The position numbers and the translations under genes are program-made. Below are positions 6,230-55,439 of a DNA stretch of 64,000 bases, piece after piece. The stretch is taken from positions 310,001-374,000 of the forward strand of contig CBFFRQ010000042.1 of assembly GCA_965644315.1 (NCBI GenBank), in the 5' to 3' direction. Under the pieces are notes generated by a model. The model was given only the letters and a program-made list of their open reading frames with translations. It made no database searches and was not told where the DNA came from. The number at the start of each line of letters is the position of its first letter. Position 1 is the stretch's first letter. The DNA is from Caecitellus pseudoparvulus. Lineage: Eukaryota; Protista; Bigyra: Bicosoecida.

Positions 6230-6277
6230 GATATGAGTAGCACGCAGGTTGTACGCATGGTGGGTATAGATGCCGCC

Positions 6278-26067: not shown

Positions 26068-27264
26068 ATGGCCGCCAGCGGGGCAGCTGCACCAGTGACG
26101 ATAGCTGTTGTAGGGGCCGGGTAAGGGTCCTTTTGCATACCCCTTGCAGTGTGATTCCATGCACTCCTCGTTTCTTCGCAGGTATTGGGGGAAGAACTAC
26201 GTCCGGGCTTTGAATGAGCTGCCGCAGTTTGACCTGCGTTTCGTTGTGGATTCGAGGGAGGAAATCCAAGCCAGGTATAACAAGCAGCACCCTGGTCTGG
26301 TCGTCACTGGCGACATCAAGGAGGCACTGGACGATGATGAAGTACAAGCAGTCGTCATCGCCACTCCTGCCTCCACCCACCACGCGCTGGGTATGCAAGC
26401 ACTTGCGGCAGGCAAGCACTGCATCATTGAGAAGCCTCTGGCAACTAGCACAGCTGACGCCAAGGCGCTGCAGGAGGAAGCAGCCGCGCGCGGCCTGCAT
26501 ATTCTTGTGGGCTTCACAGCCATCTTCATCCCCAGTGTCATGCAGGCCAAGAGCATCATCGACTCTGCCGACTTCGGCACGCCCTTTTACATGCACTCCA
26601 CCCGGACCAACCTTGGCATCATCCGCGCCGACGTGAACGTCAACTGGGACCTCGTGCCCCATGACCTGGCCCTCTTCTTGTATTGGAATCCACACCCAGT
26701 GCAGTGGGTGTCGGCGACGGGCGTGGACTGTGTGAAGCCAGGAACAGAGAAAGCAGACGGTGAGAGCTGGCGATTCCAGGCACTGTCCCCACCGCTGCAC
26801 CGCAAATACTCCCCGTCACAGCTGTCTTTGCAACGATTAAGTTTAGCAATGGAGTCATGGGCCACATCATGGCCTCGTGGAGCGACCCTAAGAAGTGCAG
26901 GGAAGCGTTCATCGTCTCCAACAAAATGCGGGTGGCGGTGGACGATGTGGACATGTCCCGCCCCCTGGCAGTGTTCCACCAGAGCATCAAGGAGGAAGAC
27001 ATCGGCGAGAAGGTGCTGGATGCCGCGAGCAGCTTCGGAGAGGCAAAGATGATCACGACAGTGGGGGACACGGTGCTGCCGCGGGTGCAGTGGGGCGAGC
27101 CCCTCAAGAACCAGGTCCTTTCCTTCCACAGCCTGCTGACGTCCCCCGAGGCCACGACGCCTGCCTCAGCTGAGCTAGGCGTTAGGGTGGTGCAGTTGCT
27201 TGAGGCCATTGACACTTCCATGGCTGCTAACGGTGTGCCAGTTCCCATCTCCCCCCTGGAGTAG
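26068..27264 (+). CDS. Gfo/Idh/MocA-family NAD-dependent oxidoreductase, bacterial nucleotide-sugar 3-dehydrogenase (WlbA/WbpB/GnnA)-like; introns 26121-26181, 26760-26821
   Basis: Spliced IAVVGAGYWGKNYVR, AVVIATPASTH, GKHCIIEKPLA, STRTNLGIIRADVNVNWDLVPHDL, HIMASWSDPKK, GEPLKNQ. Confidence 0.88.
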
Positions 27265-27471
27265 ATGCAGCAATGAACGCGCCTGCTCGACCCACAGCAG
27301 CAGCCCGGCAGCTAGCACAAAACTCTGCACCGTGGCGGCCCACCCTGCGGTTAACGCCCAAGCGCCCAAGGCAGCTCGAATCCGCCCTCTTGTGCCCCTC
27401 TGTCATGAGTCCCTGAGGCCACACGTTTCATCCGCCGGTTCCAGTCGGCTGGCGTTTCACCTGTCCCAGCC

Positions 27472-30285
27472 ATGGCCGTCGCCCACACAGCACCCAGCAT
27501 CCCAGTGCAGATTCGGGTGCCATGGGGGTCAGGCTCGGGCATCAGTGTGGGGTCTCCGCCTTCCAGTCGCGGTTCCCCTGTGTACAGTGTCAAACAGACC
27601 CCAACAGCAGGTGTGTTGGTCTCCCAGCGTTTCGCTCGCTTGGCTCCGCCCAAACCCACCTGCTCGCCTGAGCCAACCCTCACAGCGACTCCCACTGCAT
27701 CGACAAGCGCAAGTCAGCGTTGTCTGTCCACTGCATTTCGAAGCCTGCGTCGGAGGTTGTTCTGCTTTGCAGCAGTGCTCATGTGCCTCTCACTCGGCAC
27801 CATCTCAGTCGGGCTCTTCTCAGGCAGTGTCCTGGGAGTGGCCTGGAGGCAGGCAGCTGGGAAACCAGCGCCACTGCACCTCACCGCTGTTGTGTACCCT
27901 GATGGAGGCAGCGTAGCACAGCAAGGCCGGCTGTTCCGGGACCTGCAGTCCCAGAGCTGGCTAAATCCCTGGCTGCAGCTCAGCGTGTTGTGGGTGAACC
28001 CGGCCCCTGGGAGCTGGGTGGAGCGGGCCTTGTTGCAGGAAGTCGGCTGGCACGCCGTGTATGTGGAGGAAGAGGACGTACTCCCGGTGCTCCACACAGC
28101 CGTGCGGCTGGCGGCGGCTGCCGAGGCACGCCAGGCAGCCGCGTGGGTGGTTCTCGGCGACACGCTGCGACTGGCCGACAAGTTCAGCGGACTGGTGTTC
28201 CGAGCGTTGTTCCAAACACCACCCATGGACCCCGACGTAGGCGTCTACGAGTCCACAGCGCCTGTGCCGCGCCCAGAGCTACACTTGCTGCAGGCAGGCC
28301 AACAAGTGCTGTCCCTCGGCCACGGGCTGCCAGCGTGGGCCATATCCCCCGCCGTCGTTCGAGGCTTGGAGCTTGGAGCTGCCCCCTGCCACACGACCGA
28401 GTCCACACATGGCAATGCGACTGCAGTAGCGCTGGCCTTGGACCGCTGCGCGGTGTCTGGGCCAGCAGTTACGCCGTCGGTCGCCTCATTGCCGCAAGCT
28501 CTGGTGTGCCGGGCCCAGCCAAGGGGGGCCCCGCACAACACCAACAGCACTGCAGAGGAGCTGGAGGCGCTCCCAGACCTGCCTGACCACGCAGCGGCGC
28601 GTGACTTCATGGGCGGGCCAGCTGCCTACAGTGCCCTGTGCGGCACCAGCGCCGTGGTGGGCGGGGTAGCCACCACGCGCAACCGCCTGCCCCTCTTGCG
28701 GCAGGTGCTGGCTGACCTGGCAGGGCAGGTGGACCTCATGTACTTGTACTTGAACGGCCTGTCCTCCCCCCCTGCCTGGCTGCAGTCCCCTGAGTGGGAC
28801 TGGGTGCACCCCATACCCAGCGAGGGGACACACCCCCTCGCAGTGGGGGACGCAGGGGACGCTGGCAAGTTTGCAGGCGTGGACTGGGTGCCAACGGGGG
28901 CCTTCTTCGCGACTGTGGACGACGACTTGCGGTACCCGCCCCACTACCTGCGCAGTCTAGCCTCAGCCTCCGCTGCGTACGGGGACACCGCTGCAGTGGC
29001 GTTTCACGGGTACAGCGTCGTGTCCCCGTCCTGGTCCTACCTGAGCGCCCGGGCCCTGAACGTGCGCCTGCTTGGTAGTAGTGGCATGGACATGCCCATG
29101 CACGTCGGAGGCACGGGAGCCATGGCCTTCCGCCGCTCCGCTGCTGTCCCAGTCACATTCACGGACTTCCGGGCTCGCAACATGGCGGACCTGTGGATGG
29201 CCAGCGTCCTGCAACGGCACAGAGTGCCGCTGGTGACGCTGGCACACGGCCAGGGCTTTGTCACCCACCAACCCCTGCAAAGCGTGGGTGTGAAGACCAT
29301 CTGGGATGCCTTCGACGGCGCCGAGACGCCCCTGCAAGATGCTATCCTGCAGGGGCACGCGTGGTTAGCACACTCGCCCATGTGCGAGCCCGTGCCTGCT
29401 CGGCCCACAGTGTGGCACATGCAGCAAGCAGGGGGGCAAGACCGCCTGCAGGCGGTGCAGGCGGTGCACGATGCACGCGGCGCCAACAGCGTTGCCTTGT
29501 CTGAAATGCTGGGGCGTTCAAGGGGCGCGCTGGCTGAGCGGGTGACCGGCGTCATGCGCGCGCTGTCGCTGCACGCCCCGCCTTCGTCAGCTGCACCGAT
29601 CCTGGGCACCATGGCCCTCCTCGTGGACAGTGATGCAGCTGGGCGCCCTGTGGGCTCCTCCAGCCTCGGCTTCCGGAACGAGGGGCTGTGGGATGAAGCC
29701 CTGCGCCTGCTGCAGCGGGGCCTGCACCTGGCCACCCACGCGGCAGACGTCTCAAGCATTGTCTGCCCGGAGGAGAATGCGACGGCAGCCTGCTGGCACC
29801 CTGCTCGTGATGAAGAGGGCGGCATCGCCTTTCACAAGCTGCAGGGCGGCCCGGAAGGCGAGCCAGTGGAGCTGGCGCCGTCGTACGCTGGCTTGGTGGC
29901 GTTCTTCCACGACTCCATGCCCAGCGTCGGGAGGCGGGAGTTTGAGTTCCTGCTGACTGAGATGCAGCCCCAGGCTCTGGCAGTGCTGTCCATCGCCAGC
30001 CTGCAGCGCGGCGCCTGCTGCGTTCTGCAGTGCGACGCACGCCGCAGATGGCGCGTGAACACGGCTGCCTGGAGCAAGGATGCGTGCGAGGGTGGCGAGG
30101 ACCTGGCGGGGCATGCAGCAGTAGCGCTCATGGTGCACAAGGGCTGGCGGGTGGTGGATGTCCTGTCCCACTTCACGCTACTAGAGCAGCAGAGCTTTGA
30201 TGTTCTCGTGCTGCAGGGGCCGAAGGCTCGCGAGGCCGCCAGCACTCCATCTCCCCCGGAGAAAACAAAACAAGCAAAGCGTTGA
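27472..30285 (+). CDS. Multi-domain type II membrane glycosyltransferase with a bacterial-like GT-A (GT2-like) domain
   Basis: TM anchor LFCFAAVLMCLSLGTISVGLF; ATTRNRL..LAGQVDLMYLYLNG, GDAGKF, FFATVDDDLRYPPHY (DxD), HVGGTGAMAF, RNMADLW. Confidence 0.72.
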   Translation: MAVAHTAPSIPVQIRVPWGSGSGISVGSPPSSRGSPVYSVKQTPTAGVLVSQRFARLAPPKPTCSPEPTLTATPTASTSASQRCLSTAFRSLRRRLFCFAAVLMCLSLGTISVGLFSGSVLGVAWRQAAGKPAPLHLTAVVYPDGGSVAQQGRLFRDLQSQSWLNPWLQLSVLWVNPAPGSWVERALLQEVGWHAVYVEEEDVLPVLHTAVRLAAAAEARQAAAWVVLGDTLRLADKFSGLVFRALFQTPPMDPDVGVYESTAPVPRPELHLLQAGQQVLSLGHGLPAWAISPAVVRGLELGAAPCHTTESTHGNATAVALALDRCAVSGPAVTPSVASLPQALVCRAQPRGAPHNTNSTAEELEALPDLPDHAAARDFMGGPAAYSALCGTSAVVGGVATTRNRLPLLRQVLADLAGQVDLMYLYLNGLSSPPAWLQSPEWDWVHPIPSEGTHPLAVGDAGDAGKFAGVDWVPTGAFFATVDDDLRYPPHYLRSLASASAAYGDTAAVAFHGYSVVSPSWSYLSARALNVRLLGSSGMDMPMHVGGTGAMAFRRSAAVPVTFTDFRARNMADLWMASVLQRHRVPLVTLAHGQGFVTHQPLQSVGVKTIWDAFDGAETPLQDAILQGHAWLAHSPMCEPVPARPTVWHMQQAGGQDRLQAVQAVHDARGANSVALSEMLGRSRGALAERVTGVMRALSLHAPPSSAAPILGTMALLVDSDAAGRPVGSSSLGFRNEGLWDEALRLLQRGLHLATHAADVSSIVCPEENATAACWHPARDEEGGIAFHKLQGGPEGEPVELAPSYAGLVAFFHDSMPSVGRREFEFLLTEMQPQALAVLSIASLQRGACCVLQCDARRRWRVNTAAWSKDACEGGEDLAGHAAVALMVHKGWRVVDVLSHFTLLEQQSFDVLVLQGPKAREAASTPSPPEKTKQAKR

Positions 30286-30381
30286 ATGTAGTCTGCCCTG
30301 TCTGGTCTCCTGCCGGCGCTTCTGCCACCTGCGCCGAGTGGCTGCCAGAGCGGGAGGAGGCACGCGCCCCCGCAGCCGGCC

Positions 30382-32289
30382 ATGGCTGGCTGGCGCAAGG
30401 CTCTGCACCGACAGGCGCTGACCTTGACACAGGACCTGTGCGAGCCACTACCGTGTGCTCTGCGACAGCGCCATCGTGGCAGCTGGCTGTGCCTGCTGTT
30501 TCCATGCTTGGTCGTGGGGGCCATCGCGCTGGCTTTCCTGCAAACTGCTGCGGAAATCGATGCGCCACTTCCTGTGCATGCGCCCTCGCCCGCTGCACTG
30601 GAGGCCTTGAAGCTGCAGGCACTCCGGTTGATGCACCCGGACAATGAGAAGGCCAGGCTGCTGATCTATGTGCCCTATGTTTGGTACTTGACCATGGTGT
30701 CCAGGCAGATCTTCCACATGGCCGATGCCGCCTTGGGCATGCCCGATGTGGACGTGGTCGTGTGGGGCCCGGGGTGGGCGGGGTGGGACCCACACAAGTC
30801 AGAGCAGGAAAACGTCGAGGCCGCCTTTCCGTGCGGCTCCCTGGACGTCGTGTACACCATTCAACGTGTGCGGACGCCCCTGGCAGCCTACTGCTCCGGT
30901 CGCCAGGCTTGGCTGGCCAGGGAGCGGGCGCGGGCCACAGCCCCAGCGGTCGGAGACCAAGCAGCCGTGCCAGCCGCTGCAGACAGCGTAGAAGGCAGCC
31001 CACAGGGTGTTGAGCGGGGCGATGCAGCGTGGGGTGCCAAGTGGGCCACTGTCTTGACGGATGCGGCTCGCCGCAGCGCCTGGCGCTTCCCTCGCGGCGC
31101 CCGGCAGCAGGGGGACTGGGCAGACTTGGCGCAGGGCACTGACTGGGGCAGCCAGCACTTGACAGAGAAGGAGTGGTTCCCTGCCGAGGCCAGGCAGGAG
31201 CGAGGCCATGGCGCACCAGACGCAAGCACCCTGCCCTGGCCCAGCGACACGGACGACCGCAGCGACGAACGACCGGTCATCGTCATGGAGGCGAATGACT
31301 GCTACACGGGCAAGTGCATGCTGCGGGCGGGCTCCACTGAGGGTGGCCTGGGCAACGCCCACGTCGTGGTGTACCCCATTGCCCACGAGCTGCCGGCGCT
31401 GGCCCCGCTGGCATCTTCCCACTTGGTTGCACACCTGCCTTTCTGCGCCCACGCGGGGCATATCGGGAGCCCAGTGCCCTGGGAGCAACGTCGCTTCTCT
31501 GTCGCTCTTGTGGGCATGGTGAACCCGTACTACCCGCTGCGCTCCACTGTCGCCCGGGCCATGCGAGCTGGCATGCTGACCGGCCTCACACGGCAGCTGG
31601 TGCACAAGGGGTACCCTGACGCCCAGGACCGAGCTGAAGTGGCGCACTGGTACGGCATTGACCTAGAGGCGGCGCCTGAGCCGTACAGCACCGGCGTCAC
31701 GGAGGCCACGCGGTTCGTGAAGGAGCAGTACACGGAGTACTGCCACATCCTGCGGCATGCCAAGATCGTCGCCATGGACAGCAGCATCTACCGGTACTTG
31801 GTGAAGAAGTTCCCCGAGACAGCCCTGGCTGGCACAGTCATTGCTTCAGACCTGCCCCCTGAGCACGCCCGCAGTCTGGGGGGGGCCATCCTGCCCCTGC
31901 CCCTCACCACTAATACCAGCCAAGTGGCGGCCATCCTCAACGCCGCACTGCAGGACGACGCGGCGTTGCGGCAACGCGCCGAACAGGGGCGCAAGTGGGC
32001 GCAACAGCATGCGGTGTGTGAAGACCGTGTCACGCGTGTACTGGATGCTGCGCTGGCGTTTGCCGGCGGCCGCCGCGGCACCGTGTACGCTCACCAGGAC
32101 TGGGAGGCCACTCCCTGTGGTGCCACAACTAACCCCCTCGCGTCCAGGGGGCGCGCCTACACCTGGTCTCGTGACGGCTGCTCGTGCCGCGAGAGTGACG
32201 ACTCGCAGCCTGAAGTGTGCGTGGACCCCGCTTCGGCGTTCCCGACAGACCCACTGCCGAGCCACTGGGTGGACTACCAAGGCGCTTGA
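30382..32289 (+). CDS. Type II membrane glycosyltransferase, Glyco_trans_1_2/CgeB-like GT-B C-terminal domain
   Basis: TM WLCLLFPCLVVGAIALAFL; VWGPGWAGWD, LVGMVNPYYPLR, YCHILRHAKI..DSSIYRYLVKKFPETALAGTVIASDLP. Confidence 0.65.
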   Translation: MAGWRKALHRQALTLTQDLCEPLPCALRQRHRGSWLCLLFPCLVVGAIALAFLQTAAEIDAPLPVHAPSPAALEALKLQALRLMHPDNEKARLLIYVPYVWYLTMVSRQIFHMADAALGMPDVDVVVWGPGWAGWDPHKSEQENVEAAFPCGSLDVVYTIQRVRTPLAAYCSGRQAWLARERARATAPAVGDQAAVPAAADSVEGSPQGVERGDAAWGAKWATVLTDAARRSAWRFPRGARQQGDWADLAQGTDWGSQHLTEKEWFPAEARQERGHGAPDASTLPWPSDTDDRSDERPVIVMEANDCYTGKCMLRAGSTEGGLGNAHVVVYPIAHELPALAPLASSHLVAHLPFCAHAGHIGSPVPWEQRRFSVALVGMVNPYYPLRSTVARAMRAGMLTGLTRQLVHKGYPDAQDRAEVAHWYGIDLEAAPEPYSTGVTEATRFVKEQYTEYCHILRHAKIVAMDSSIYRYLVKKFPETALAGTVIASDLPPEHARSLGGAILPLPLTTNTSQVAAILNAALQDDAALRQRAEQGRKWAQQHAVCEDRVTRVLDAALAFAGGRRGTVYAHQDWEATPCGATTNPLASRGRAYTWSRDGCSCRESDDSQPEVCVDPASAFPTDPLPSHWVDYQGA

Positions 32290-32477
32290 GGCCGTGGGCA
32301 GAGGCGCTGTGAGAATTAATTTGTATACTTCCCTTGCAAGCTTGGGTATGCACCATGGCTGCCGGCGTCAGGGGCTCCCCGTCGCGCCCAGCAGTGCACG
32401 CCTTGCTGCGTGAAGCCATCCCATCCCAGCACCACAAGTCCAATCGGAGAGGCAGTGGCTGCGAGGCCAAACCAAGC

Positions 32478-34452
32478 ATGGCGTCCCCCATCATAACCAA
32501 CACGCTTGTTGTTGATTCTGGCGGCATCATCAACGCCATAGCTCTCAACGGCAAGGCAGAGGTGTGTGGCAACGTGGGCAGGGCCGAGAAACAATTTCCG
32601 CACACGCCCCTTCCTCCTGCGTGCTTCCCAGAAGTATGTCACGATCCCGGAGGTGTTCGACGAAATCAAAGATGAACAATCACGCAAGCGCATGGCCCAG
32701 CTGCCCTTCGACTTGGATGTTCGGCAACCGAGCGATGCTGCTCTGGCAGCAGGTGCGTGGACTGTGGCGTGTTCTGTGCGCGGGTGCCGGGCAGCTCCGC
32801 CCCGCCCCCACGGCCTTGTGCGGCACACCCCACGCCGCCTCCCGCCACAGTGTCCACCTTTGCCCGCACAACGGGGGACTTGAAGTTCCTGTCCAAGGTG
32901 GACGTGCACGTTCTTGCCCTGACGTACATGGTGGCAGCCGAGGCGCGGGGCTGGGCAGACCTGGCAGAGGACATCACCACCCGGCTGCGCCGCATCACTG
33001 ACAAGGCCGCCAAAATCGCCATCCCCGGCGCACCTGCTCCCCAGCCGGCGCCATCTGCGTCCACTGCTGCCGCCCCAGGGGCCTCAGGTGCCCAGCCACC
33101 CGCTGCTGGCGCGCGCTCCGCGCCCAAGGCATGGGGCAAGCCTGCCAAGGCCAGCGGCAAGAAGCCAACCTTTGCGCAGCTCCTCGCCTCTGCCACAGCT
33201 GAAGAGGAGGACGGTGGTGATGCCCCTGCCCCGGCAGCTGCTGAGCCACCCAGCGCGGGGCGTGTCCGCTTCGCTGAGCCGACGCCGGAGGTGCCGGATT
33301 TCGGACAGGATGCCTTCCCCACGCTGCGCCCTGCCGCCGGCACAGCGGAGGCGGCCGCCTTGCCGCAGCGCATGGCGCCCCCCTCGTGGCCTCCTCCAGG
33401 CAGTGAGGGGCAGCGCCGCCCAGTTGGCACCTCCATCCTGGCCCTGGTCGCACAGGACACGGCTCGCAAGGCGGTGTCCGCGGCGCTGTCCACCATCCGG
33501 ACCCAGTACCCAGAGCCGGAGCCGGAGCCGGAGCCGGAGCCAGTGGGGGGCGACAGCGCGCCCCACGCTGGTGGGGCGGCGTCTGGTGGCGGGGCGGCGG
33601 CTTCCCGCAGCCACATCCTCAGCCACGGCGTGGCCCAGGGCTCCACAGTGCGGCATGTGAAGGCGGGGGAGGAAGACGACGGGCCTGCCTGGGTGACGCC
33701 CGGGAACTTGGCAGCAGTGCTCAGCTCAGGGGCTTCCTTTGGCGCGGGAAAGCGGGGGGGCGGGGACCCCGTCCCCGTCTCCCCCGTCGCATGTGTCACA
33801 GTCGACTTCACTATGCAGAACGTGCTGCTGGGCATGGGCCTGCGGGTGCTGGCTGCTGACGGGCGCCGTGTGAAGCGCAGCAAGCAGTTCGTGCTCAAAT
33901 GTGACTCCTGTTTCCAGTGCGTGCCCCTGCCTCGCGCGCTGTCGCGCAGCCCTGCCTCACGCCCAGCCCTCTCCCCACAGTGTGACTCGCGAAATGGACC
34001 GGCTGTTCTGCCCTGCCTGCGGCCACGCCACCCTGGCCCGCCTGGGCGTGACTGTGGACGGCAAGGGGCGCTCGCACTACCACTACTCCAAGCACCGGCG
34101 CGTGAACACGCGGGGGCAAGTGTACTCGTACGGCAAGCCGACAGGCGGCCGGGGCGGGGACCTGCTGCTCAGCGAGGACCAGCTCATGTTTGGCACGTGG
34201 GCAGGCAAGGCCAGGAAGAAGGAGCGGCACGAGTCCATGTGGGCTGACGGCGCGGAGATGATGCACAGCGTCAAGCGCGCTGGCTTTGGTGGCGGCTGGA
34301 CCAAGCCCACTGCTGGCGGGTCGGCCACCAGCGCGCCGGATGGCTTGGGCGTGCGAGGCAACAAAAACATCGTCGTGGGCAAGAAGGGCAACCCCAACGC
34401 GCGCAAGGGCCGTGAGCGACGCGGGGCCAAGAAGAAGAACAAGAAGCGCTGA
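32478..34452 (+). CDS. NOB1: 20S pre-rRNA D-site endonuclease NOB1 (3 introns)
   Basis: PIN domain LVVDSGGII, TIPEVFDEIKD, TGDLKFLSKVDVHVLALTY; ACVTVDFTMQNVLLGMGL; Zn ribbon CDSC..FCPACGHATL; NTRGQVYS, LLLSEDQ. Confidence 0.93.
33510..33543 (+). repeat. (GAGCCG)n coding repeat (Pro-Glu) inside the NOB1 insert
   Basis: About 5 tandem GAGCCG units. Confidence 0.85.
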
Positions 34453-43600: not shown

Positions 43601-46600
43601 GCTGTGACGTCGTGCTCACAGGTAGCGTCCCAGCCCTGCACCAAGCGTACCTGCACGTTTTGGCCCAAGCTGGCGCCGTACCTGAGGCTCGCACGGTCGC
43701 CCTGTCCCTGCTGAGGCCCCACGACTACGTCAAGAGCATTGCGGCTGATGCTGCAAGCAGCACACCCACCAAGAACCCTACAGCGTCCCCCCTCCGCCGA
43801 TCCGTGCGGGCTGTGCTCGCAGCTGAGGAGAAGTCTGCAGCCGCGCTGGGTGTTGGCGAGAGTTCCAGCGCAGCAGCAGAGGGGAGCGAGGAGGACGTCA
43901 CGCTTGGCTGCCTCAGCACGGCCCTCTTCAATGCTCTGCTCCTGTGCTATGGAGCAGATGGGGCCAGTGACAAGCTGGCGGACCTGGCCGACACCATGGC
44001 AGGCGCCGACGTGACCCCTTCTCCTGAGAGCTTCGGAACCTTGCTGTCCACGCTGGCGGCTCACGACATGGCCGAGGCAGGGGTGCAGGCGGCTGAAGTG
44101 CTGGCTGCCAGCACCGCCCTCTCGCCCCACGCGCAAGTTGCGCTGGACGTGCAGGCCCTGTTGGCCCAGGAAGGCATCGACGCGCCCCCGCCTGCAGCAT
44201 CCCTGGGCCCAGCTGTGCAACAGCACGTCGCTGGCCGGCGCTTCGATCCCTTGGCCAAGGCGGCCCTGGTGGCTGTCAAGGAGAGCGCTGCCAAGGCGGC
44301 CCGCGCCGCCGCCTCTCTGAGCAAGGATGGCGCCAGTGGGGCGGGCACAGGCGCCCTGCAGGTGCCCTTCTCCATGACCCCCGCCGTGACGCCGGCCCTG
44401 GCCAACGTCTTGCGGGGCCGATCAGCTGTCCTCCCAGGGGAAGCGTCGCGGTGCAGCGGCGCGGCGGGCTGCTTGATGACTCACATGTATATCAAGGCCG
44501 GGCAGCTGGCTGCTGCCAGGCTGACACTGGCGGGGGTGGAGCGGGGCATCGCTGTGCCTCGTTCAGACATCCAGGGTTGCTACGACGCCCTCGTTGCGGC
44601 CTTTGCCGCCGAGGGCGCCTCGGCTGCCGTGGATGAGTGCCTGGCTGCCATGGAGGAGTCTGGGCAGATGGCAGGGGAGACGGAGCAGGGCGCGTGCCTG
44701 CAGGGCAACGACGCCCCAGCTCCCTCGCCCAGCGGGACAGACGTGCACTCCCTGGTGGCAGACCCCTGCTCCTGCACCGACAGCGGGCGTGACGACGTGG
44801 GAGCCGATGCTGCCGATGCTGGGGAAGCCCTGGGAAAGCGGGGCATGAGCCGCCTTGTGCGTTGTGCCGCCAACGCCAGCGTCATGGAGGGCACCTTCCG
44901 CAAACTCATGTCCTCCTACGGCCTGCAGGGCAAGGTGCAGCGAGCCCGGGCCACGTTCGAGGGCATTCAGCGTGTCCGCGCCAACAAGAAGCTGACGGAG
45001 GACATGGCAGCAGCTGCCCTGCCTGGTGGGGAGGACGACGCAGCCCAAGAGGTCATGCGCGGTGCCCTGAGCAAGTGGGCTGCAGACGCCACAAGGGCGG
45101 GTATGGTGGCGGAGGACGAGGCGGCGGAAGCGCTGAATGGCCAGGAGGGGCTGGCAGCGCTCATGGACAGCATGGTGGCCGTGGCTGGGGCCGGCACGGC
45201 GGCACGCAGCACCAGCCGCCAGCTGTGCGGCACCGTCTCCGCAGATGAGGTTCAGCACGGCCCAGAAGGCGGGGATGACACCCAGCATGTCTCCATGTAC
45301 ACCCCAGACACCACCAGCGACGCAGCGGACGCCTCAGCGGCGCCTCGAGCTGGCATGGATGCCCTGGTGGCAGCATCAGCCCCCGCAGCGCTGAACGTCA
45401 CTGCAGCGGCAGTGACGACCGGCTTCAGCGCAGAAGTGGAGGCGTCTGCCAAGGCCATGGCAAAGAAGCGACGTGCGTCCAAGGCAGCCAAGCAAGCGGC
45501 CGCTGCCGAGGCAGGTACAGACGACGCGTTGGCGGCTTCCTCGTCAGATGAGGAAGAGGATGCCACCGGCACATCCCTGGGTGCAGAGGCCTTCAACGTG
45601 CTCATCGACGCCTACGGCGAGGGCTGCCGTCTAGACCTGGCGGTGGGGACCCTGTCGGAGATGCTGCAGGACGGCACCGTGCCCAACGCAGGCACGCTCA
45701 TCGCGCTCATCAACGGCTTTTCCCTGTCTGGCCGTGGGGCAGAGGTGCTGGGCGTCATGGACCAGGTGCACAGCCTGCTCAGCACGCGGTCACACCTGTC
45801 CGAAGCCTCCATCAACAAGCTGCTCATGGACCACGGCGTCGTGGCAGCACGCTTGGCTGCCCTCGGCACGTCAGGCCGCCCTGACCTTGTGCATGCTGCT
45901 TGGCTCAGCTACTGCGAGTTCAAGTTGGGCTTCGAGCCCTCTGGCCCCAAGTCAGACGGCGTGAACAACGTTGAGCGGCTGCTGCCTGTCTTCCCCGTGT
46001 ACTCCCAGCTGCCTGGCAGCGTCACGTCCGACACCCATCGGGCACTGGCGGAGGCGTACTTGTCTGCGCAGGCCATGGCCCTCAGTCGTTGCGGAGGCAA
46101 CGCGCACTATGCGACGGCTTGTGTGCGGTCTGCCGCAGGGCTGGTGCGGGGACAGGAGCAAGCCGAAGCAGAGGCATCGTCCGGGGGCGACCCGCTGCGC
46201 GCTGCGCTGGCGTCGCTGCCCGTGCCCACGCAGCTGGACGAGTGCGTGGCGCTGATGCAAGACACGGCAGCTGCCTTGGCGGAGCTGGGGCACCCCATGT
46301 CCATCACGGCGCTGACGTCCCTGGCCCTGGCCTACCGCATGGCGGGCATGTCTGATGCCGGCAGGCAGCTGCTCATGCAGGCCGTGGGGCTGGTGGCACA
46401 AGCCACGTCCAGGGGCGCCTCGGCAATCAGGCACTACCACGTGCCCACGGGGACCCCTACCTCCTCGGCAGGGTGGGGGTACGGCATGGACTGCATTCAC
46501 ATGGATGGTCATGAGGACACGACCATGGTGGCTGTGGAGGAGGGAGCCACAGCGGCGCCCGTCCCAGGGACGCTGGTGCCGTCCGACGTGCGTCTGGATC

Positions 46601-49600
46601 CCGAGATCCTGGCCGCCCTCATCACCGCCCTGGGTGCCAACGGCATGACAGGGGAGGTGCGTGCGGTGCTGGAGAGCGTGTCTCGGTCTGCAGGTGTCGT
46701 GGACACGGCCGCGGCCGTGAAGCACGTCCGCAGCGCCATCGGCCTTGAGGCGGCCACCGCCCAGGACGAGGGCAGCGGCGCCTCCCAGGCCGTCGTGTCC
46801 GCTTGGAACGACTTGACAGATGACCTGCGCCACATGCTGTACGCGGCGTTCGGCATGCGGCGCGACGTGGCCACTGCTGACCGCCTGTGGCGTGCAGGCG
46901 GCTACTCCGCCCGGGTGTACACGAAGGCTATCACGTCCCGGCGGGGTGATGCGGGGGGCGACGGCATGGTATCTGCCGACCACAAAGGCATCGTCATGAT
47001 GGCAGCCGGCGGCGAGCCGGAGGACAGCCCTGCCCGCAGCACCCGCAGCGGCAAGGCGCCGCCCTCCCCCCCTCGGCGTCGACGCCACCGACAGAGCATT
47101 GCCCTCACCCCCATGAATGCCTTGGCGCCCAAGGTCAGCCTGGCCAGCATGCCCATCGGGCGCGGGTCGGGGACGGCGGAGGAGCCCGAGGCGCCCACCC
47201 CTGCCGGCGGCTTGCCCAGCGAGGATGCTGCTGCCGGGGATTGGATTGAGACGGCGGTGTTGGCCCTCGTCCGCAATGCCCAGCACAACTTGCTCACACA
47301 CATGGCCACGGTGAAGTCAGCCGAGGTGCAGGGCGACACGCAGTCCGCTGCGGCGCGCATGATGGCGGGGGAGGGCGTGCTGGGCGTCGTGTTCGACCCC
47401 ACCTTGAACACGGCCCCTGCTTCTCCGCGTGGAGGGGGGGACTTCTCCTACGCCTCGGCGAGAGACGCCACTGCTGCCTCCTTCAAGACCCCTGGCCAGG
47501 CGCCTGGGCCCCCCTCACGGCGCCCAGGCCCCCCTGCTGGGCCTCCATCCCGACGCAAGAAGACCGCGTCCGCTGCTGTGCGCCGCAGGCCCAGCATGCT
47601 CATGAGCGCTGTGGCCCTGCAAGGCGCCTCTGGCAGTGCGGCAGGCTTCAACGCCGCGGCGCTGATGGAGGAGACGCCATCCACCCCGGAACCCAGCCCC
47701 TACGCGCTGCCCTCCCTCGCGGAGGAAGGGCCTTCCGACGGGGACAGCGACGGTGCACAGGCACCCAGCGAGGAAGAGGCGGCCCAGCGCGCCCTGCTGC
47801 AGCGCGTGAGTCAGGTGACCAGTGCGCCCAACGCAGGGGGGGGCTCTGGCATGGACGAGGCGGGTGCGCTGTTCTCCCCTCTGGCTGCGGCGCTGAAAGT
47901 GGCAGCCCTGTGCGCAGAAGGCAAGGTGGATGCGGCGCTGGGCGTGATGCTGCCGTGGTGGCGCCTGCGTCTGGAGCGCCGCTCCACCTCCCTGGCTGCG
48001 CGCCGCCGCTCCAGCCGGCTGATGATGGGCAGCCAGGGGCGGGACGCGGGGGCGCCCCCTCCCCGCCGGGCGCCCGCCTCTGGCGCCATGCCAGACGACG
48101 ATTCAGTGCCGGGTGTGGGTGTGGTGTACTGGAGCGACAGCGACGACGACGAGGGAGGGGACGAGGAGGCGGCTGGCGTGCGGGGTGTGCGCAAGGTCAA
48201 GCGGCGCCTGCCTTTCCGTCCCCTGCCTGAGACAGTGTCCCACCTCCTGCACGCCATCGCCCGCACGATGCGGGAGCGCATGGGCACGCTGGAGGCCCAG
48301 GCCAAGCGCCGGGCCGCCACTGCAGGCACCACCTCCAAGCGCGGCAGTGTCAGTGTGGGGGAGCCCATGGCCCCGGCAGCTTCGCTCAGTGTGCACTCAG
48401 ACCCCGTCCTGGCCCTGTACGAAGACGTCATGTGGCGTCTCGTGCGGGCCGTCACGGTGGGCGGCGGACTCATGCTGTCCGACACCGACCACGCCGCCAT
48501 TCTGGAGGTCGTGGCCCTGCGCGGCCGCGTAAAGGAAGCCTGCGATCGCATGGTGACGCAGGCCCGTGCTGACGGCACCGCCCCCCTGCGCACCATGCGC
48601 CTCTCGCACTTGGCCGCCTATGCCGCCAGCCACAACGACGCCGCCTCCGTGGCTGCAGGCGCCGCCAGCGTGGGCCTGCCCCAGGCAGTCGCAGGCGCCA
48701 GCATCACCGCCTTCAACGCGGTGCTGGCGGGGTTGGCGGGGTCTCCCGCGCTCACCCTCAAGGCGGCCGAGTTCGTGGCCATGCGCATGCGGCAGTGGTA
48801 CGTTCCGCCCGACATGTCCACGGCATCCGCTGTGGAGGCCATGTCTCAGCGCCTCAAGGTGGACCTGCACCCACTCTTCAACACGCGCTCGCCGCGGCAG
48901 CTGCACATGCAGTCCCAGCGTGACCCCTGGGCGCGTGGGGCAGACGTGGAGGCCCCCTCCCGCCCCAACCAGCCTTCCCTGGCAGCGGCACTGTTCTTCA
49001 AGCTGCCAGGTCGTCCTGGCAGCGGCCTGACGTCGGTCACCACGGCTGTCGGCAGCGTCGTGGGGCGGTGGCGTGGCGCCACCTTGGCCCGGCGAGTGGC
49101 GCTGCTGCAGTCTGCGGTGGCCAAGGCCGTGCACACGTTCATGTTCAGCGTGGGGGGGGTCGTGGTGGGCGGCATGCTGGCTGGCGCCAGCCCCCTCTCC
49201 ATCGAAGTGCACGCTGGCATGCTGCCGCCGAGTCTGGCCAGCCTGCTGCGCGGGACGCTGGCCAGTGTGCCGCCTGTGTCCCTGCCAGGCGCCGCGCCTG
49301 TGCGGGAGGGAGCAGCGGAGGACCCCTGGTCCGCATCCCCCGACGCCGCTGCTCCGCCAACCGGCCGGCGCAGGGGGTACACCGTGCAGCGCCCGGGGCG
49401 CAAGGGTGCAGAAGAGAGCCGGGAACGGGCTCGGACTCTGTACCCCGCCGCAGACATTGTGCCGCTCGGCGGCATGGGGCAGGGCATGTGGAGCAGCACG
49501 ACGGCGGAGTTGGTGGCAGGGCAGGCCGACCTGCTGGATGCCTCCTCCTCTGTCGGCGGCGTGTACTCCGACGCAGAGGACGTGGACGCCAGTGACGCGA

Positions 49601-52600
49601 GCAAGTCTGACGGAGAAGTCAATGAGCACATCAGGGCGCTGACCCTGGGCAGCACGCTGGCTGACGCGGCCGCCAGGCGGAAACTGGATGCCCGGTTCAT
49701 CCCGCCACCCCCTCCCCGTCGCAAGGTGCGGCGTGTGGACGAGGAGAAGGCCCGTGCCGTGGAGGCCGCCAGAGCAGCCGTCTTCTCTTCCTCCCCCGAA
49801 TTCGGCTTCTTCACGGCTGACATGGCTGGGCGCTCTGCTGCACGCCGCGAGGCGGGGTCGGGCACTGTGCCCAGCCTGGAAGACATTCAGGAGTCAGCAG
49901 TCGCCTCCACAGCCCTCTTTGACAACGCGTACGACCGGGAGCTGGCGGAAAAGGCCAAGGCCAAGCAGACTGCCGCCGCCACGACGTACGATTTTGTCGC
50001 CGCTGCAGGGCTCAAGGCCGCGTCACCGCCGGCTGAGGGCCTGGACACGACGGTATTCAACCGGACGCCATCCCCAAAGAAGCTGTCCTCAGACCCCATG
50101 TCCCTCTCCCACAGCCTGGCGTGGAAGGGCATGCAGTCCCGCGTAGACCACGCACTGGCAGGGCGGGCTGTGGGCCTGTCCCCTGAGAAGGACCCCCCTC
50201 AGCAGTTGCTGGAAGCGGCGCCGGCACACTCCGAGGCGTACTCTGCACTGGCAACGGATGCCCGCCCAGCCCACCCTGGTGTTGGCCCGGGGGAGGCGCT
50301 CCCAGACCGGGTGCAGAGGGAGGTGCTGTACCAGCGCCCAGGCGGGGAGGCAGTCATCAAGGTTGCGTCCCCTGCCAAGGGTGGCCACACAGTCGCCAGC
50401 TCCACCTCCCCAGGGCACTCCCCGGGTGTGGACCTGGCCCACGACCCCACCACCCAGGCAGAGGGCGAGCTGGCCCGTACCTCCTCGGCCACATCCCCTT
50501 CACGCAAGGTGGCGGGCTTGGCCGGCGCACACGACGCCCAGCAGGACCTCCTCTCGTTCGCGGCAGGCGGCGCCAAGGAGGCTTCGGAGGCAGGCGCCCC
50601 CGTGCCCTCCGCCCTGGAGGCGTACCTGGCCGACCCCTCCTTCACCGTCACCCGTGACGACGTTCTGACGGTGCGGGCGGAGCTGGTGTCCCTGTCTGCG
50701 GAGTTGGCCTCCACGGTGGCCACCATGATGCGCTCCGAGGCCAGCCTCAATGCGACACAGGCACAGGGCGCCCAGGCAGATTCCTACGCGCGCGCCGTCA
50801 CAGGCCTGGGCCTGCGTGACGTTGGCACGGCAGCCCTGTCGGAAGCCATGGCCCTGCGCAGCGACACAGCCTTGACAGAGGCGGTGGCTGCCGTGGCCAG
50901 CGGTGCCTCCCCCAGCACAGACATCGTCCCGGCGCACCTGGCCACCGCGCAGCCCTCAGCGGCTGACCTGGTCGTGCTGTCCTCCACACACCCTGCGGCG
51001 ACCTTGCCGCCTGTGACGGCCACCGAGCTCACGCAGCGCGTGAACTGGGGTCGCCTGGTGAAGCCTTTCTCGGGCGCCGGCATCATGACGGAGAGCGGCA
51101 AGCGGGACGTGGCACGCCGTCGTGTTGCCACGCTGCGGGCCGCCCACGCCCGCCTGGAGCGAGAGGAGGGCGAGCTGGCCATGCGCCTGGCCGCGACGAC
51201 GCCCCACGCCCGGGCGGCGCGGGAGCTCCTGGCAGGGTACCAGGACGCCGTGAAGGAGCTGAACGGCCGGGAGCGCGCCATGCGGAGCCAGGTGGCTCGA
51301 GACGAAGCTGCCTGCGATGCCCTCGCTTCCGGCCCCGGTCGGGACCGTGCCACACTGCGAGCATGGGCAGAGGGCAAGCCGGGTGTGGGCGCCTTGCACC
51401 CCGAAAGCAGCATCCTGGGGCAGACGGGGCAGGTGCTGCGCTCTGCACGCACGTCCGCGGCTGCCGCCTTCTCGCGGCAGCTGGACGGCATGGTGGCCAA
51501 CGTGGCGTTGCTGGAGCAGGTGGAAGCGGACACTGCGGAGCGCGTGGCTGCCCAGCGCAAGCGGGTGGACGCCCTGGTGGCTGCCTCCCTGAACTTGGAA
51601 GAGGACATCGCCGCCCTGAAGGAGGAGGAGGCCGGCTTGGCGGCTGAGATTGCAGAGTTGGAGGAGCGCTTTGAGGAGGCGCTGGCCACCAATGACGCCG
51701 TTGCAGACCAGCTGCACCAGACGGGCATCAAGGCGAAGGAGGTGCTGGCACACACGCGCGTGGATGCGGCGACTGCCCGTGAGCACGGCATCGAGGTGGC
51801 CATGCGAGAGGCCCGTGTGCGTGGCGCACGCACCGCCGACGCTGAGGGCAGAGCCGCTGTGGAAGCTGCCACGAATGACTGGGCGGAGCGCACGGCAGCA
51901 CACGCGCACTCTGTGGCGGAGAAACTCAAGGCTGTGCGGGCGCGGGTGAGTGAGGAGATGTCGGGACACCTGCAGCCGCTGCTGAAGGAGGCAGAGGCTG
52001 AGGCCCGCTCTGCCGCCGGCGAGCGCGCCGCGCTGGAGGAGCAGCTGACTGCCATGGAAGAGCGCCTGTCCTTCCTGTCCAGCGAGACGGGGGCACTGAC
52101 CAAGCACACAGACACACTGAGGGGGGTGCAGGACAGCATCCTCAGCGGGGAGCGCCTGGCGCCGGAGGGGCTGCGGCAGCAGTTGGGGGAGCTGGCCGTG
52201 CAGCCCTTCCAGCCACAGCACGAGGGCGACGAGGACCAGCGCAGTGTCGCCCTGGACCTCATGCAGTCCCTGCGCATCCCGGCCGTGGACATGACGGCGT
52301 TCGTGGAGGAGGCGGTGGAGGTGTCTCAAGCCCAGGCTTGTGCCCCCGATGCCGTGGAAGCCATCTTCAAGCTGTACGCAGAGGAGGGCCAGACGCGGCA
52401 GGAAGCCCACAAGGCACGCAAGGCTGCGGCGGCCACCGCCGAGGCTGGTGATCTGGCTGTGGCCTCCTCCCCTCTCCGCCGGCCCTCCCCCAGCTCCAGC
52501 CCCGGCAGCTCCACAGCGGCGCAGCTCAAGGACATCTATGCGCCGCCTGTGTCACCGGATGCGGGCCCAGGTAGGTACGAGTCTGCCCTGGCGGGCCTGC

Positions 52601-53961
52601 ACGATGTGGCAGCGGCGCAGGAGCGCCTCCTGGACGCAGCCGAGGCGGAGGGGGTGGTGCGCAGCCCCGACGGGCAGGCCGGTGCCCTCGCCGCCCTGGC
52701 AGACACTGCCAGCTCTGTAGGCTCAGGGTCGGAGTTCAGCCAGGGCGGGGGTGCGGGCACTGCCACCTTCCCGCGCGGCGGCGATGGCCAGCGCACGGGC
52801 AGGCTCACAGGCGCCTACACCATGGCGCTCCTGCGCAGCGCAGGGCTGAGCGCGGCAGAGGCCGCCTCCCTGGCAGTGGCGCCCGACACCTCAGAGGCCA
52901 TTGCTGCGGGAGACAAGGAGCGCGGCGCAGGCACACAGGCTGGCTCCTTTGCCAGGCGTGTCTCCTTCACGCCGGCCCACTCCCGCACACGCCGGGCCTC
53001 CAGCATGACTGCTGGCTCCGCTCGCAGCAGCAGGTCGCGGGGAAGCTCGGCCGCTCCTGCGCCTGCCCCCGCCCCTGCCCCTGCTAGCAAGTGGGCCCGC
53101 AACACGGCAAAGAAGCAGCCGGCGCCGACCCCCCGTGCCGACGCTGCTGCAAAGCTGCTGCGGCGTGCATCTCACGGCATCCTGCCTCAGATGGGAGCTG
53201 TGCGGCACACACCAGACACCACCCGGCGCCGTATCGTGGGCGGTGCCGGCAAGGCAGGCGGTGCCTCCAACATGACCCTGACGACCAGTCCCACCCACGG
53301 TGGCGATGGCCAGCGAGTGGAGGTGCAATCCTCCGTCGCCGGCTCTCTTAGCCGCGACCTAGCGCCCACAGCCGGGAGGGCGGGCCAGCGCACCAAATCG
53401 GTCATGCCACCCAGTGTCACACGCGCCATGCTGACCAAGAGCGCTGCCGCGGCTGAGGTCATGCGCGCTGCCTTGGAGGCCCAGGAGCGGGCCGGGGACT
53501 ACGTGGGGCGGGAGGAGGAGGCCGCCGCCCCCGCCTCCACCACCAAGCTAGGCAGGAAGCCCGGTCGAGGGCAGGCTGGCGCCCGAGGCACCGTGCAGAG
53601 CGCCGCGGCCTTCAGCCCCCTGCCCACCTCCCAGCGGCGGGGCAGCTACTGGGGCTCCAGCTCCTATTTCAAGGTGCACGGGGCCAGTGCGACGCCTGCA
53701 GCCTTGGCTGGCATCGAGGAGGGCGCAGGGGTGAAGGGTGTGCAGGCGGTGCCTCGCCTAAACAAGGCGCTGCGGCGGCAGGAAGCCAACCGCCGCGCCG
53801 CGGAGCAGGCCTCCAGTGTGGCGACTGGGCAGACGTACGGTGGCGAGAGCCGCGGCCAGGACTTCATCGACCCCACTGCCTCCGGGCGCCGGGGCAGCTA
53901 CTTCGGCACGTACTCTGGGCGCGGAGGGGGGGCTGCACCCAGACGGGGCTTGCGCAAGTGA
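37607..53961 (+). CDS. Giant (~5,340 aa) RhoGEF(DH)-PH-PH / Pro-rich / PPR-repeat / coiled-coil protein; exon 1 37607-37645, exon 2 37984-53961
   Basis: Splicing gives LAEVI-STEVTYL (DH start); FLIMPIQRIPRYEMLL; PH LYLFNDLLLV; PH LQKRGKSAFGGWRSRWFVL..LHYYES..PKGTIDL; at least 12 PPR-like motifs. Confidence 0.85.
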
Positions 53962-54115
53962 GCACGTCGCAGGCTGCCGTTTCCCGCCAATGCACTGATT
54001 GCACGTGTGTGAAGGGGCGGTGGGGTGTGCCCGCGACGTGGCCACCCTGCGCCTGTGTACGAAACATGCATGCATTGGCACACGACAGGTGCACGTGGGT
54101 GGAGGGAGCCCCCGC

Positions 54116-55439
54116 TCAGCCCTGTGCAGTGGCGGCAGCTGCACTGGCTGGGGCCTCGGCGGCTGCCTCCTCCATGGCCTCCTTGAGGCACTGCACGATG
54201 TGGTCTTGCACGTCCTCCGTGAGGTAAGGGTGCATCGGCAGCGACAGCACCTCCTTGCCAAGCGCCTCCGTGACGGGGAAGTCGCCCTCCGCCCAGCCGT
54301 ACTCCGCAAAGACCGGCTGCAGGTGGCAACCGGTGGGGTAGTACACGCCGCATGGAATGCCGCGTGCCTTGAGGCCCGCCACCACGGCGTCGCGATTGCT
54401 GACTCGCACGGTGTACTGAGCGTACACGTGCGTGTTACCTGGCACCACTTGAGGAGGGGTGGCGGCAGTGCCGGACAGCAGCTCACTGTACCGTGCGCCG
54501 ATGCGGCCCCGGGCCTCCACGGCCGACGGGAAGTGCTTCATCTTCACATTCAAAACGGCTGCCTGCAGGGAATCCAGGCGCCCCGTGAAGCCCAGCCGGG
54601 TGTGCGTGTCCCGCACAACTGCGCCGTGGTTGCGGATGGCCACGCAGTTGGTGGCCAGCTCGTCGTCATCGGTGAACACGGCCCCGCCGTCGCCGAAGCA
54701 GCCCAAGGGCTTGGCGGGGAAGAAAGACGTGGTGGCGATGCGGGAGAGGCTCCCTGATGCTTTGCCGCCCTGCGTCGCGCCGAAGGATTGCGCGGCGTCC
54801 TCGATGATGGGGATGCCGCTCTCCTCGCTCAGCTCGGCCAGCGCTGCCATGTCAGCACACTGCCCGAACAGGCTCACGGGCATGATCGCCTTGGTCTTGG
54901 GTGTGATCGCAGCCTTCACCTGCGACACGTTCATGTTGAAGCTGTGGGCCTCGACATCCACCAGGACAGGTGTCGCGCCGGCCAAGACGATGGCCTCCAC
55001 AGTAGAAATCCACGTGAACGGCACGGTGATCACCTCATCCCCTGGCCCGATGTCCATGGCACGCAGGACCATGTGAATGGCAGATGTCCCGTTGTCGCAT
55101 GCGATGCAGTGCTTCACCCCAACGAAAGCGGCCAGCGTTGCCTCCAGGTCCTTGATCTGCGTCGCGGAATTTGCGGTGTTGAGCGGCGAGCCAGAGACAG
55201 CCCTGCTTGCATCGCACGAGCTCACCTGTGGCCCGTTAATGAAGCATGTCGCCTGCAAAACCTCATCCATAGCGGCTTTGAACTCTTCCTTGTGCTCATC
55301 GTACTGCGCACGCGAGCACACGCCACCAGGATGCCCCGTTGCGTGGGGGCCACTCGCAGCCGACGATTTCCGCACAGCGCCTCACCTCTGTCTTCAAGTC
55401 GATGAAGCGCAGGTCGTGGCCTACGCGTGTGTCCGCCAT
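54116..55439 (-). CDS. DegT/DnrJ/EryC1/StrS PLP-dependent nucleotide-sugar aminotransferase, WbpE/WlbC/GnnB-like; introns 55304-55385, 55157-55225
   Basis: FIDLK..FINGPQIKDLE, IGPGDEVIT, PVSLFGQCAD, IEDAAQSFGA, TSFFPAKPLGCFGDGGAVFT (PLP Lys), RLDSLQAA, VYAQYTVR, LSLPMHPYL. Confidence 0.94.

Follow-up and report, generated by a model that had tools for sequence, protein, structure and literature searches.

In the small, GC-rich bicosoecid stramenopile Caecitellus pseudoparvulus, three domesticated nuclear genes of prokaryotic type probably make up a cytosolic route to a 2-acetamido-3-amino or 3-acetamido sugar nucleotide. Two of them, encoding a Gfo/Idh/MocA oxidoreductase and a DegT-family aminotransferase, lie in the stretch of DNA analyzed here (the window: 64,000 nucleotides, GenBank assembly GCA_965644315.1, contig CBFFRQ010000042.1, positions 310,001 to 374,000 of the forward strand). 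The third lies on another contig (C200) and encodes a WlbB/WbpD-like N-acetyltransferase fused to a short nucleoside diphosphate (NDP)-sugar-dehydrogenase-like domain. An earlier note on the window had proposed an acquired bacterial-type 3-amino-sugar pathway. The family of the aminotransferase and the domestication of the genes held up, and the C200 gene strengthens the pathway reading by adding a WlbB/WbpD-like step, whereas the pairing of the oxidoreductase with the aminotransferase is one that we infer from bacterial and environmental gene neighbourhoods, not from adjacency in this genome.

Gene structure and genomic residence

Both window genes carry two short GT..AG introns each, show host-like codon use and have eukaryotic neighbours (Table 1). 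The splice models rest on homology and splice-site consensus. In the aminotransferase, the predicted first exon contributes RFIDLKTE, which corresponds to the N-terminal MQFIDLKTQ of bacterial homologues (alignment A1). Read through, its second intron appears in the same alignment as a 23-residue insert that is missing from all five bacterial homologues and whose edges are exactly GT and AG. The resulting protein begins right at the conserved fold and has no presequence.

The oxidoreductase models are matched by environmental relatives. Exon 1, which ends with the first two bases of the last glycine codon of IAVVGAG, was aligned with the N-termini of P0122, P0126 and P0124 (alignment A2). P0122 (contig L022) is 70% identical to the oxidoreductase over its entire length and contains a read-through, in-frame 69-nt segment (GTGCGT..CGCAG) identical in position and phase to intron 1. 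The fragment P0121 (81% identical) goes out of frame exactly where intron 2 starts, and the join predicted there, GTEKAD to (A)VFATIKFSNGV, agrees with the homologues. All three exons are collinear end to end with full-length relatives, the joins match column by column, and the protein has no N-terminal extension past the conserved fold (A2). Because P0122 and P0121 share its intron positions, the oxidoreductase gene evidently predates the divergence of at least two or three related eukaryotes.

Table 1. Positions of the genes and open frames discussed (window coordinates, except for the C200 gene).
Feature	Position	Strand	Remarks
Oxidoreductase (Gfo/Idh/MocA) gene	26068-27264	+	3 exons, 2 introns
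Oxidoreductase exon 1	26068-26120	+	17 codons from ATG; ends inside the IAVVGAG Rossmann motif
Oxidoreductase intron 1	26121-26181	+	61 nt, GTAAGG..CGCAG, phase 2
Oxidoreductase exon 2	26182-26759	+	NAD-binding domain (YWGKNY, EKP); the catalytic domain begins here (WDLVPHD)
Oxidoreductase intron 2	26760-26821	+	62 nt, GTGAGA..CACAG, phase 1
Oxidoreductase exon 3	26822-27264	+	C-terminal alpha/beta domain to TAG stop
DegT aminotransferase gene	54116-55439	-	3 exons, 2 introns
Aminotransferase exon 1	55386-55439	-	MADTRVGHDLRFIDLKTE
Aminotransferase intron 1	55304-55385	-	82 nt, GTGAGG..GCGCAG, phase 0
Aminotransferase exon 2	55226-55303	-	YDEHKEEFKAAMDEVLQATCFINGPQ; aligned in A1
Aminotransferase intron 2	55157-55225	-	69 nt, GTGAGC..ACGCAG, in frame, no stop
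Aminotransferase exon 3	54116-55156	-	Nearly all of the DegT fold; pyridoxal phosphate (PLP) lysine in TSFFPAKPLG; EDAAQSFGA; TGA stop
Fusion gene: short NDP-sugar-dehydrogenase-like domain and WlbB/WbpD-like N-acetyltransferase	G000:C200 ~5056-6684 (L020:5056-6681)	+	Single open frame
Possible associated gene, 937-aa open frame	27472-30285	+	Directly downstream of the oxidoreductase; central part GT2-type-glycosyltransferase-like
Possible associated gene, 635-aa open frame	30382-32289	+	Weakly glycosyltransferase-like C-terminal part
5390-aa uninterrupted open frame	37789-53961	+	Between the two genes; used as host codon-use reference

Relative synonymous codon usage (RSCU) correlated with that of host genes at r = 0.95 for aminotransferase exon 3 and at 0.77-0.82 for the oxidoreductase exons, compared with 0.84-0.99 for host genes and 0.48-0.70 for bacterial homologues. 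A GPKOW/G-patch splicing factor gene lies directly upstream of the oxidoreductase. The contig that holds the window is at least 374 kb long, and the genome measures 30.6 Mb. Among named sequences, those closest to its cytosolic HSP90 come from oomycetes and diatoms (72-75% identity), which places the organism among the stramenopiles; one environmental sequence reaches 90%. The aminotransferase locus was found again, flanked by the same 1286-aa gene, in an independent metagenome assembly. The earlier note had placed both genes at these positions, with two introns each, host-like codons and eukaryotic neighbours, and the coordinates, homologue alignments and RSCU values agree with it on each point.

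Assembly contamination was considered and set aside because of the introns, the host codon use and the eukaryotic flanks. We likewise give almost no credence to the broader notion that the genes are nonfunctional in this organism, whether as contaminants or as decaying relics of a transfer. It would fit the long branch of the aminotransferase and its lack of a close eukaryotic relative. However, all three frames are intact with catalytic motifs retained, and every gene combines host codons with short GT..AG introns (a candidate one in the C200 gene). They are embedded among eukaryotic genes, on a large contig in the case of the window pair. The recurrence of the aminotransferase locus and its neighbour in the second assembly, and the intron positions shared by oxidoreductase relatives at 70% and 81% identity, also argue against it.

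A WbpE-like aminotransferase

Searches with the window genes were run exon by exon or via contiguous references, and their scores are per exon. Aminotransferase exon 3 matches PF01041 (DegT/DnrJ/EryC1) at 361 bits (Pfam). The best solved relative of the enzyme is Pseudomonas aeruginosa WbpE (3NYU/3NU7; 327 bits, E 1.4e-96), followed by structures at 299, 281 and 258 bits; QdtB (226), perosamine synthetase (221) and ArnB (158-167) score lower. The motifs TSFFPAKPLG, with the PLP lysine, and EDAAQSFGA, the Asp/Gln cofactor motif, stand opposite WbpE's own in the HMMER alignment to 3NYU and are invariant among homologues. All five WbpE motifs that the earlier note had listed for this protein fall opposite the same WbpE motifs in that alignment.

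A collection of 5.8 billion proteins contains thousands of bacterial and metagenomic sequences that share 56-63% identity with the aminotransferase. The named homologues come from Planctomycetes, Verrucomicrobia, Chlamydiae, Actinobacteria and other groups, and many carry the label UDP-2-acetamido-2-deoxy-ribo-hexuluronate aminotransferase. No eukaryotic relative closer than the bacterial ones was found there, the sole match above 63% being the gene's own locus. A tblastn-based scan of Joint Genome Institute (JGI) metagenome contigs, able to catch intron-split genes, also returned no relative above 63%.

Trees were built with FastTree (123 rows) and with an IQ-TREE mixture model (37 rows). Both place the aminotransferase inside the WbpE-like family, at an unresolved basal position and on a long branch (1.17 against a median terminal branch of 0.25 in the IQ-TREE tree). 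Distant DegT outgroups join this branch in the trees, probably through long-branch attraction. The earlier note had expected nesting within bacterial clades, but the trees show the enzyme nested in no particular one. By these comparisons the aminotransferase is a WbpE-family enzyme of prokaryotic type, for which the trees give no donor lineage. Some of its close bacterial homologues have an adjacent WbpA gene and some do not.

Two further observations concern this family. P0029, at 63% identity the bacterial aminotransferase most like that of Caecitellus, shares an unusual length of 515-519 aa with P0019, P0064 and P0116 (L011:2280-3839, L012:378-1937), some 150 aa above the norm. The P0029 gene is part of a polysaccharide cluster that also holds beta-helix, flippase, hexapeptide and NeuB-like genes. 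A second, divergent DegT-like frame of 405 aa is present on contig C81 of the Caecitellus genome (L003:817-2034, minus strand; PF01041 at 80 bits over model positions 54-199). This frame may correspond to the patchy eukaryotic DegT group described from Andalucia (PMC7050145).

A WlbB/WbpD-like acetyltransferase outside the window

The earlier note was correct that the window itself contains neither WbpA nor WbpD. It had also called for a genome search for WbpA, WbpD and WbpI, which yielded the WlbB/WbpD-like gene on C200 but neither of the other two. The C200 gene was found with a Planctomycete Gfo/hexapeptide fusion as query and is 52% identical to its WbpD half. For its acetyltransferase domain, the match to Bordetella petrii WlbB (3MQG) has an E-value of 1.1e-62 and spans residues 4-186 of 192; PF00132, the left-handed beta-helix hexapeptide fold, is matched at 58 bits. 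WlbB is the 3-N-acetyltransferase of the 2,3-diacetamido-2,3-dideoxymannuronic acid (ManNAc3NAcA) pathway (PMC10622841). Codon use of the C200 gene is host-like (RSCU r = 0.90), and a candidate in-frame intron of 75 nt (GTGAG..CAG) lies at L020:5179-5253.

The N-terminal 335 residues of the C200 protein form a shortened relative of the NDP-sugar dehydrogenases. They retain the GGHC motif, lack the C-terminal UDP-binding domain and cover only model positions 114-272 of 413. The family of this short domain consists of proteins of about 250 aa, with 578 representatives at E <= 1e-10 and no curated model; one member adjoins a hexapeptide gene.

An oxidoreductase nearer GnnA than WbpB

The oxidoreductase has VGAGYWG (Rossmann GxGxxG), IEKP (EKP lysine) and WDLVPHD (D-x3-H), all of them conserved in A2; in Gfo/Idh/MocA sugar dehydrogenases these are the catalytic motifs. 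Exon 2 matches PF01408 at 75 bits (Pfam), whereas exon 3, searched alone against Pfam and PDB, gave no match.

Among solved structures, exon 2 matches 3c1a, 6nor and 7bvj. A profile of the oxidoreductase's clade ranks them as 3c1a, 7bvj (E 3.6e-35) and 6nor. The first is a structure without assigned function, and 6nor is probably a C3 dehydrogenase of gentamicin synthesis. The remaining structure, 7bvj, is GnnA, a uridine diphosphate N-acetylglucosamine (UDP-GlcNAc) 3-dehydrogenase (bioRxiv 10.1101/2024.11.05.622173). No chain named WlbA or WbpB is among the 58 exon 2 matches at E <= 1e-5, or among the best 60 of 97 matches of the clade profile. The entries 3O9Z, 3OA0 and 3OA2, which we take to be WlbA/WbpB structures, are absent from those same listed matches.

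For full-length members of the clade, the best NCBIfam model is always UDP-GlcNAc 3-dehydrogenase (NF040723; 113-184 bits), with inositol 2-dehydrogenase at 83-121 bits. For exon 2 alone, inositol 2-dehydrogenase scores 80.6 and UDP-GlcNAc 3-dehydrogenase 76.4 bits, both far under the cut-offs.

The nearest relatives of the oxidoreductase are environmental (P0121, 81%; P0122, 70%; P0123, 52%; P0124-P0128, 45-48%), and bacterial ones are about 40% identical. In a tree, the eight eukaryote-like environmental sequences form one clade (local support 96%) apart from the Gfo genes that adjoin bacterial WbpE homologues. The earlier note had likened the oxidoreductase to WbpB, WlbA and GnnA. As the WbpB/WlbA structures are absent from its listed matches, we conclude that it is no WbpB/WlbA orthologue. 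It stands nearer GnnA and the archaeal UDP-GlcNAc 3-dehydrogenases, and it has a separate history in its small eukaryote-like clade.

Two contigs bearing members of this clade (L110:9177-10418 and L111:1593-3041, both minus strand) share an 82%-identical orphan protein and differ in G+C content (70% vs 38%).

Gene neighbourhoods and probable partnership

The case for pairing the oxidoreductase with the aminotransferase is circumstantial but coherent. Neighbourhoods were surveyed at 80 bacterial loci carrying the closest homologues of the aminotransferase, in many of which the contig ends within the locus. A homologue of the window oxidoreductase (31-39% identical) was present in 48 of the 80, mostly directly downstream of the aminotransferase. 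A WlbB-like gene was found in 43 and WbpA in 38. The Planctomycete locus L010 provides a complete example, in the order WbpA, epimerase, WbpE and Gfo/hexapeptide fusion. When its WbpE-adjacent Gfo half was compared with the Caecitellus genome, the window oxidoreductase was clearly the best match (E 1e-25, with 7e-6 and 0.007 for the next).

Links of this kind also occur closer to the oxidoreductase itself. P0126, an intronless member of its clade (351 aa), lies about 440 bp upstream of a stand-alone WlbB-like gene that is 52% identical to the C200 domain (L023:538-2627 for the pair). The metagenome scaffold concerned (L023; BUCK21-1...scaffold_8087) has eukaryote-like gene spacing. A bacterial relative, P0135, sits in a cluster of Gfo, hexapeptide, GT2 and DegT genes. 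In the window, about 27 kb separate the oxidoreductase from the aminotransferase; by a rough, post hoc estimate, chance placement this close in 30.6 Mb would occur about 2 times in 1000.

It is unlikely, in our judgement, that only the aminotransferase and the WlbB-like fusion are partners. The oxidoreductase would then act on another sugar or on inositol for the glycosyltransferase-like genes downstream of it, and the 3-keto substrate would come from another enzyme. The separation of its clade from the Gfo genes adjoining WbpE homologues fits such an arrangement, as does the slightly higher inositol 2-dehydrogenase score of exon 2. The oxidoreductase is also first in a same-strand run of genes without other pathway members, and the genome has three other Gfo-family genes. 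In contrast, its rank as the genome's best match to a WbpE-adjacent Gfo, the top scores of full-length clade members for UDP-GlcNAc 3-dehydrogenase, the WlbB-like neighbour of P0126 and the position of GnnA as second-best solved match all favour a three-enzyme partnership.

Several further points weigh against the three-enzyme route. Because the three genes are not adjacent, with the acetyltransferase on another contig altogether, it is by analogy that they are taken to work together. No curated equivalog cut-off is reached by the oxidoreductase (450 bits for NF040723). Its history is separate from that of the aminotransferase and acetyltransferase, in a clade of its own, and its low identity to the Gfo neighbours of the most similar bacterial aminotransferases (31-39%) belongs on the same side. 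Between the glycosyltransferase-like frames downstream of it and the genes that flank its relatives on L023, L110 and L111, no homology was found. Finally, a WbpA gene often accompanies the bacterial genes most closely related to the aminotransferase and acetyltransferase, which suggests a uronate substrate, and this genome shows no evident uronate source.

Proposed route and nature of the product

We infer the substrates, the order of steps, the three-enzyme partnership and the fate of the sugar as follows. The Gfo/Idh/MocA enzyme would oxidize C3 of UDP-GlcNAc with nicotinamide adenine dinucleotide (NAD+), the reaction known from GnnA and the archaeal UDP-GlcNAc 3-dehydrogenase. The WbpE-like PLP enzyme, for which homology is strong, would transaminate the 3-keto sugar to the 3-amino compound UDP-GlcNAc3N. 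The C200 acetyltransferase domain, again with strong homology, would acetylate the 3-amino group to give UDP-GlcNAc3NAc in the cytosol. This product would be consumed by the cell's own glycosyltransferases, possibly including the two downstream frames, for a surface glycan.

The set of missing partners bears on both the product and its use. No WbpA was found in the genome. Of its NDP-sugar dehydrogenases a single one is full-length, and this is a canonical UDP-glucose 6-dehydrogenase that matches solved chains of that name at E 5e-160. Two such chains, 3tdk and 3prj, are the human enzyme. For WbpI, a search for Epimerase_2 (PF02350) gave no match anywhere in the 30.6 Mb, although it was positive in 11 of 14 control genomes. 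The bacterial initiating transferase (Bac_transf), Wzy and Wzx were likewise not found in the genome. The pathway genes present are nucleotide-sugar tailoring steps only, and use by the cell's own glycosyltransferases is proposed because no bacterial-type assembly genes were found.

With WbpA missing, a uronate product is doubtful and a neutral sugar is, for the same reason, somewhat more likely. A uronate, UDP-GlcNAc3NAcA, would be the product as in Pseudomonas and Bordetella if C6 oxidation were carried out by the fused C200 domain or by a promiscuous UDP-glucose dehydrogenase. The aminotransferase and the acetyltransferase are closest to the uronate-acting WbpE and WlbB (pathway: PMC10622841), and WbpA is present in 38 of the 80 closest bacterial loci. 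The fused domain is a member of the NDP-sugar dehydrogenase superfamily in which GGHC is retained, and it could supply the C6 oxidation. We nevertheless regard a uronate as rather improbable. The fused domain lacks the C-terminal UDP-binding domain and comes from a family of about 250 aa with unknown function, and the sole full-length member of the superfamily in the genome is the canonical UDP-glucose 6-dehydrogenase. Moreover, the oxidoreductase stands closer to GnnA and the archaeal enzymes, which are specific for UDP-GlcNAc, than to WbpB/WlbA.

A more far-reaching version of the three-enzyme route is tentative, and we doubt it slightly more than we believe it. It holds that this free-living stramenopile makes and displays a 2,3-diacetamido-2,3-dideoxy hexose or uronate, of a sugar class associated until now with bacterial O-antigens, lipid A and archaeal glycans, through a eukaryote-adapted pathway assembled from at least two separate acquisitions. 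One would be an older GnnA-like dehydrogenase shared with uncultured relatives among the protists. The other would comprise the WbpE-like and WlbB-like enzymes, the latter with a fused phage-type short domain that perhaps catalyzes a new step.

Neighbouring open frames and a possible viral origin

Two open frames follow the oxidoreductase on its strand with short gaps between them. Residues 370-650 of the first, the 937-aa frame, resemble GT2-like clusters at 0.97-0.98 in a protein-atlas feature search, which serves as a lead only; the frame has no match in Pfam. The second, of 635 aa, matches PF13524 (Glyco_trans_1_2) at E 0.0017, under the family cut-off, and a PDB search with it gave no useful match. 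Both may be glycosyltransferases. Nothing ties them to the proposed sugar.

These frames also touch on how the genes were acquired. The nearest atlas clusters of the short C200 domain are mostly from tailed phages (Uroviricota), and two of the three glycosyltransferase-like clusters are likewise viral; both are leads only. If the genes had come by way of a virus, in giant-virus or phage-derived DNA, and not straight from a bacterium, this would concern their origin and not their function. Giant viruses do carry other amino-sugar pathways (PMC9614988), and the contigs on which the oxidoreductase has its environmental relatives are made up of large orphan frames. We consider a viral route distinctly improbable all the same, given that no viral hallmark gene was seen next to any of the three genes and that the closest named homologues of the aminotransferase are bacterial. 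The giant-virus glycan review, moreover, describes no 3-amino or 2,3-diacetamido sugar, WbpE or DegT (PMC9614988).

Comparison with known systems

In making UDP-GlcNAc3NAcA and UDP-ManNAc3NAcA, WbpB/WbpE/WbpD of P. aeruginosa and WlbA/WlbC/WlbB of Bordetella follow a common three-step logic of 3-oxidation, PLP-dependent transamination and N-acetylation (PMC10622841). WbpE and WlbB are the best solved matches of the aminotransferase and of the acetyltransferase domain in Caecitellus, respectively. In contrast to the Wbp and Wlb operons, however, the genes here are nuclear, intron-bearing and dispersed, and the dehydrogenase is of another type. WbpA, WbpI and the O-antigen assembly genes are missing, and the acetyltransferase is fused to a short dehydrogenase-like domain.

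The dehydrogenase step is better compared with GnnA/GnnB of lipid A synthesis in Acidithiobacillus and Leptospira, where GnnA (7bvj) ranks second among the solved matches of the oxidoreductase clade, and with the archaeal UDP-GlcNAc 3-dehydrogenases. The latter (NF040723) are the clade's best curated family, yet at 113-184 bits against a cut-off of 450. Both enzymes start from UDP-GlcNAc, which would fit the absence of WbpA here. Unlike GnnA/GnnB, the proposed route belongs to a eukaryote, which has no lipid A, and includes a WlbB-type acetyltransferase that GnnA/GnnB do not need. The archaeal 3-amino-sugar pathway does include an acetyltransferase.

The earlier note knew of no characterized eukaryotic example. 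In open-access full texts we found no report of the three-enzyme set, or of a route to a 2,3-diamino sugar nucleotide, in a eukaryote; the reports of such sugar nucleotides that we found come from bacteria and archaea only. A DegT-family gene in a eukaryote does have precedent, because a DegT protein with patchy distribution, predicted to be mitochondrial and of unknown function, has been noted in Andalucia, apusomonads and an amoebozoan (PMC7050145). The case resembles ours in being a bacterial-type DegT in protist nuclear genomes with patchy distribution. No partner enzymes were described for it, whereas the Caecitellus protein is WbpE-like, lacks a presequence and has candidate partners.

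A bacterial-type Wbp-pathway step in eukaryotes and their viruses is likewise represented by the pairs of WbpA-like UDP-GlcNAc 6-dehydrogenase and chitin-synthase-like genes in fungi and algal viruses (PMC4059230). Those pairs perform the C6 oxidation for which Caecitellus lacks the enzyme, and no 3-amino chemistry is involved. The amino-sugar pathways reviewed for giant viruses are of other kinds, without 3-amino sugars or WbpE (PMC9614988).

Significance

The novelty lies in known enzymes in a new host domain and in a new gene arrangement. The type of event is ordinary, as transfer of bacterial sugar-metabolism genes to protists is frequent, and there is no sign of new chemistry. The C200 gene could help to assign a function to the short-dehydrogenase-like proteins, because its fused domain belongs to that large uncharacterized family. 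The proposal is directly testable, with three small soluble enzymes, purchasable substrates and assays established for Pseudomonas and Bordetella. Interest would grow if the sugar were found on the cell. Should the enzymes prove active, they would be a clean example of how a prokaryotic multi-step sugar pathway can be reassembled in a nucleus, where its genes acquired introns and became scattered and one of them was fused. They would also represent, as far as our literature search shows, the first means by which a eukaryote makes a 2,3-diamino sugar nucleotide, and a sugar regarded as bacterial would join the eukaryotic glycan repertoire.

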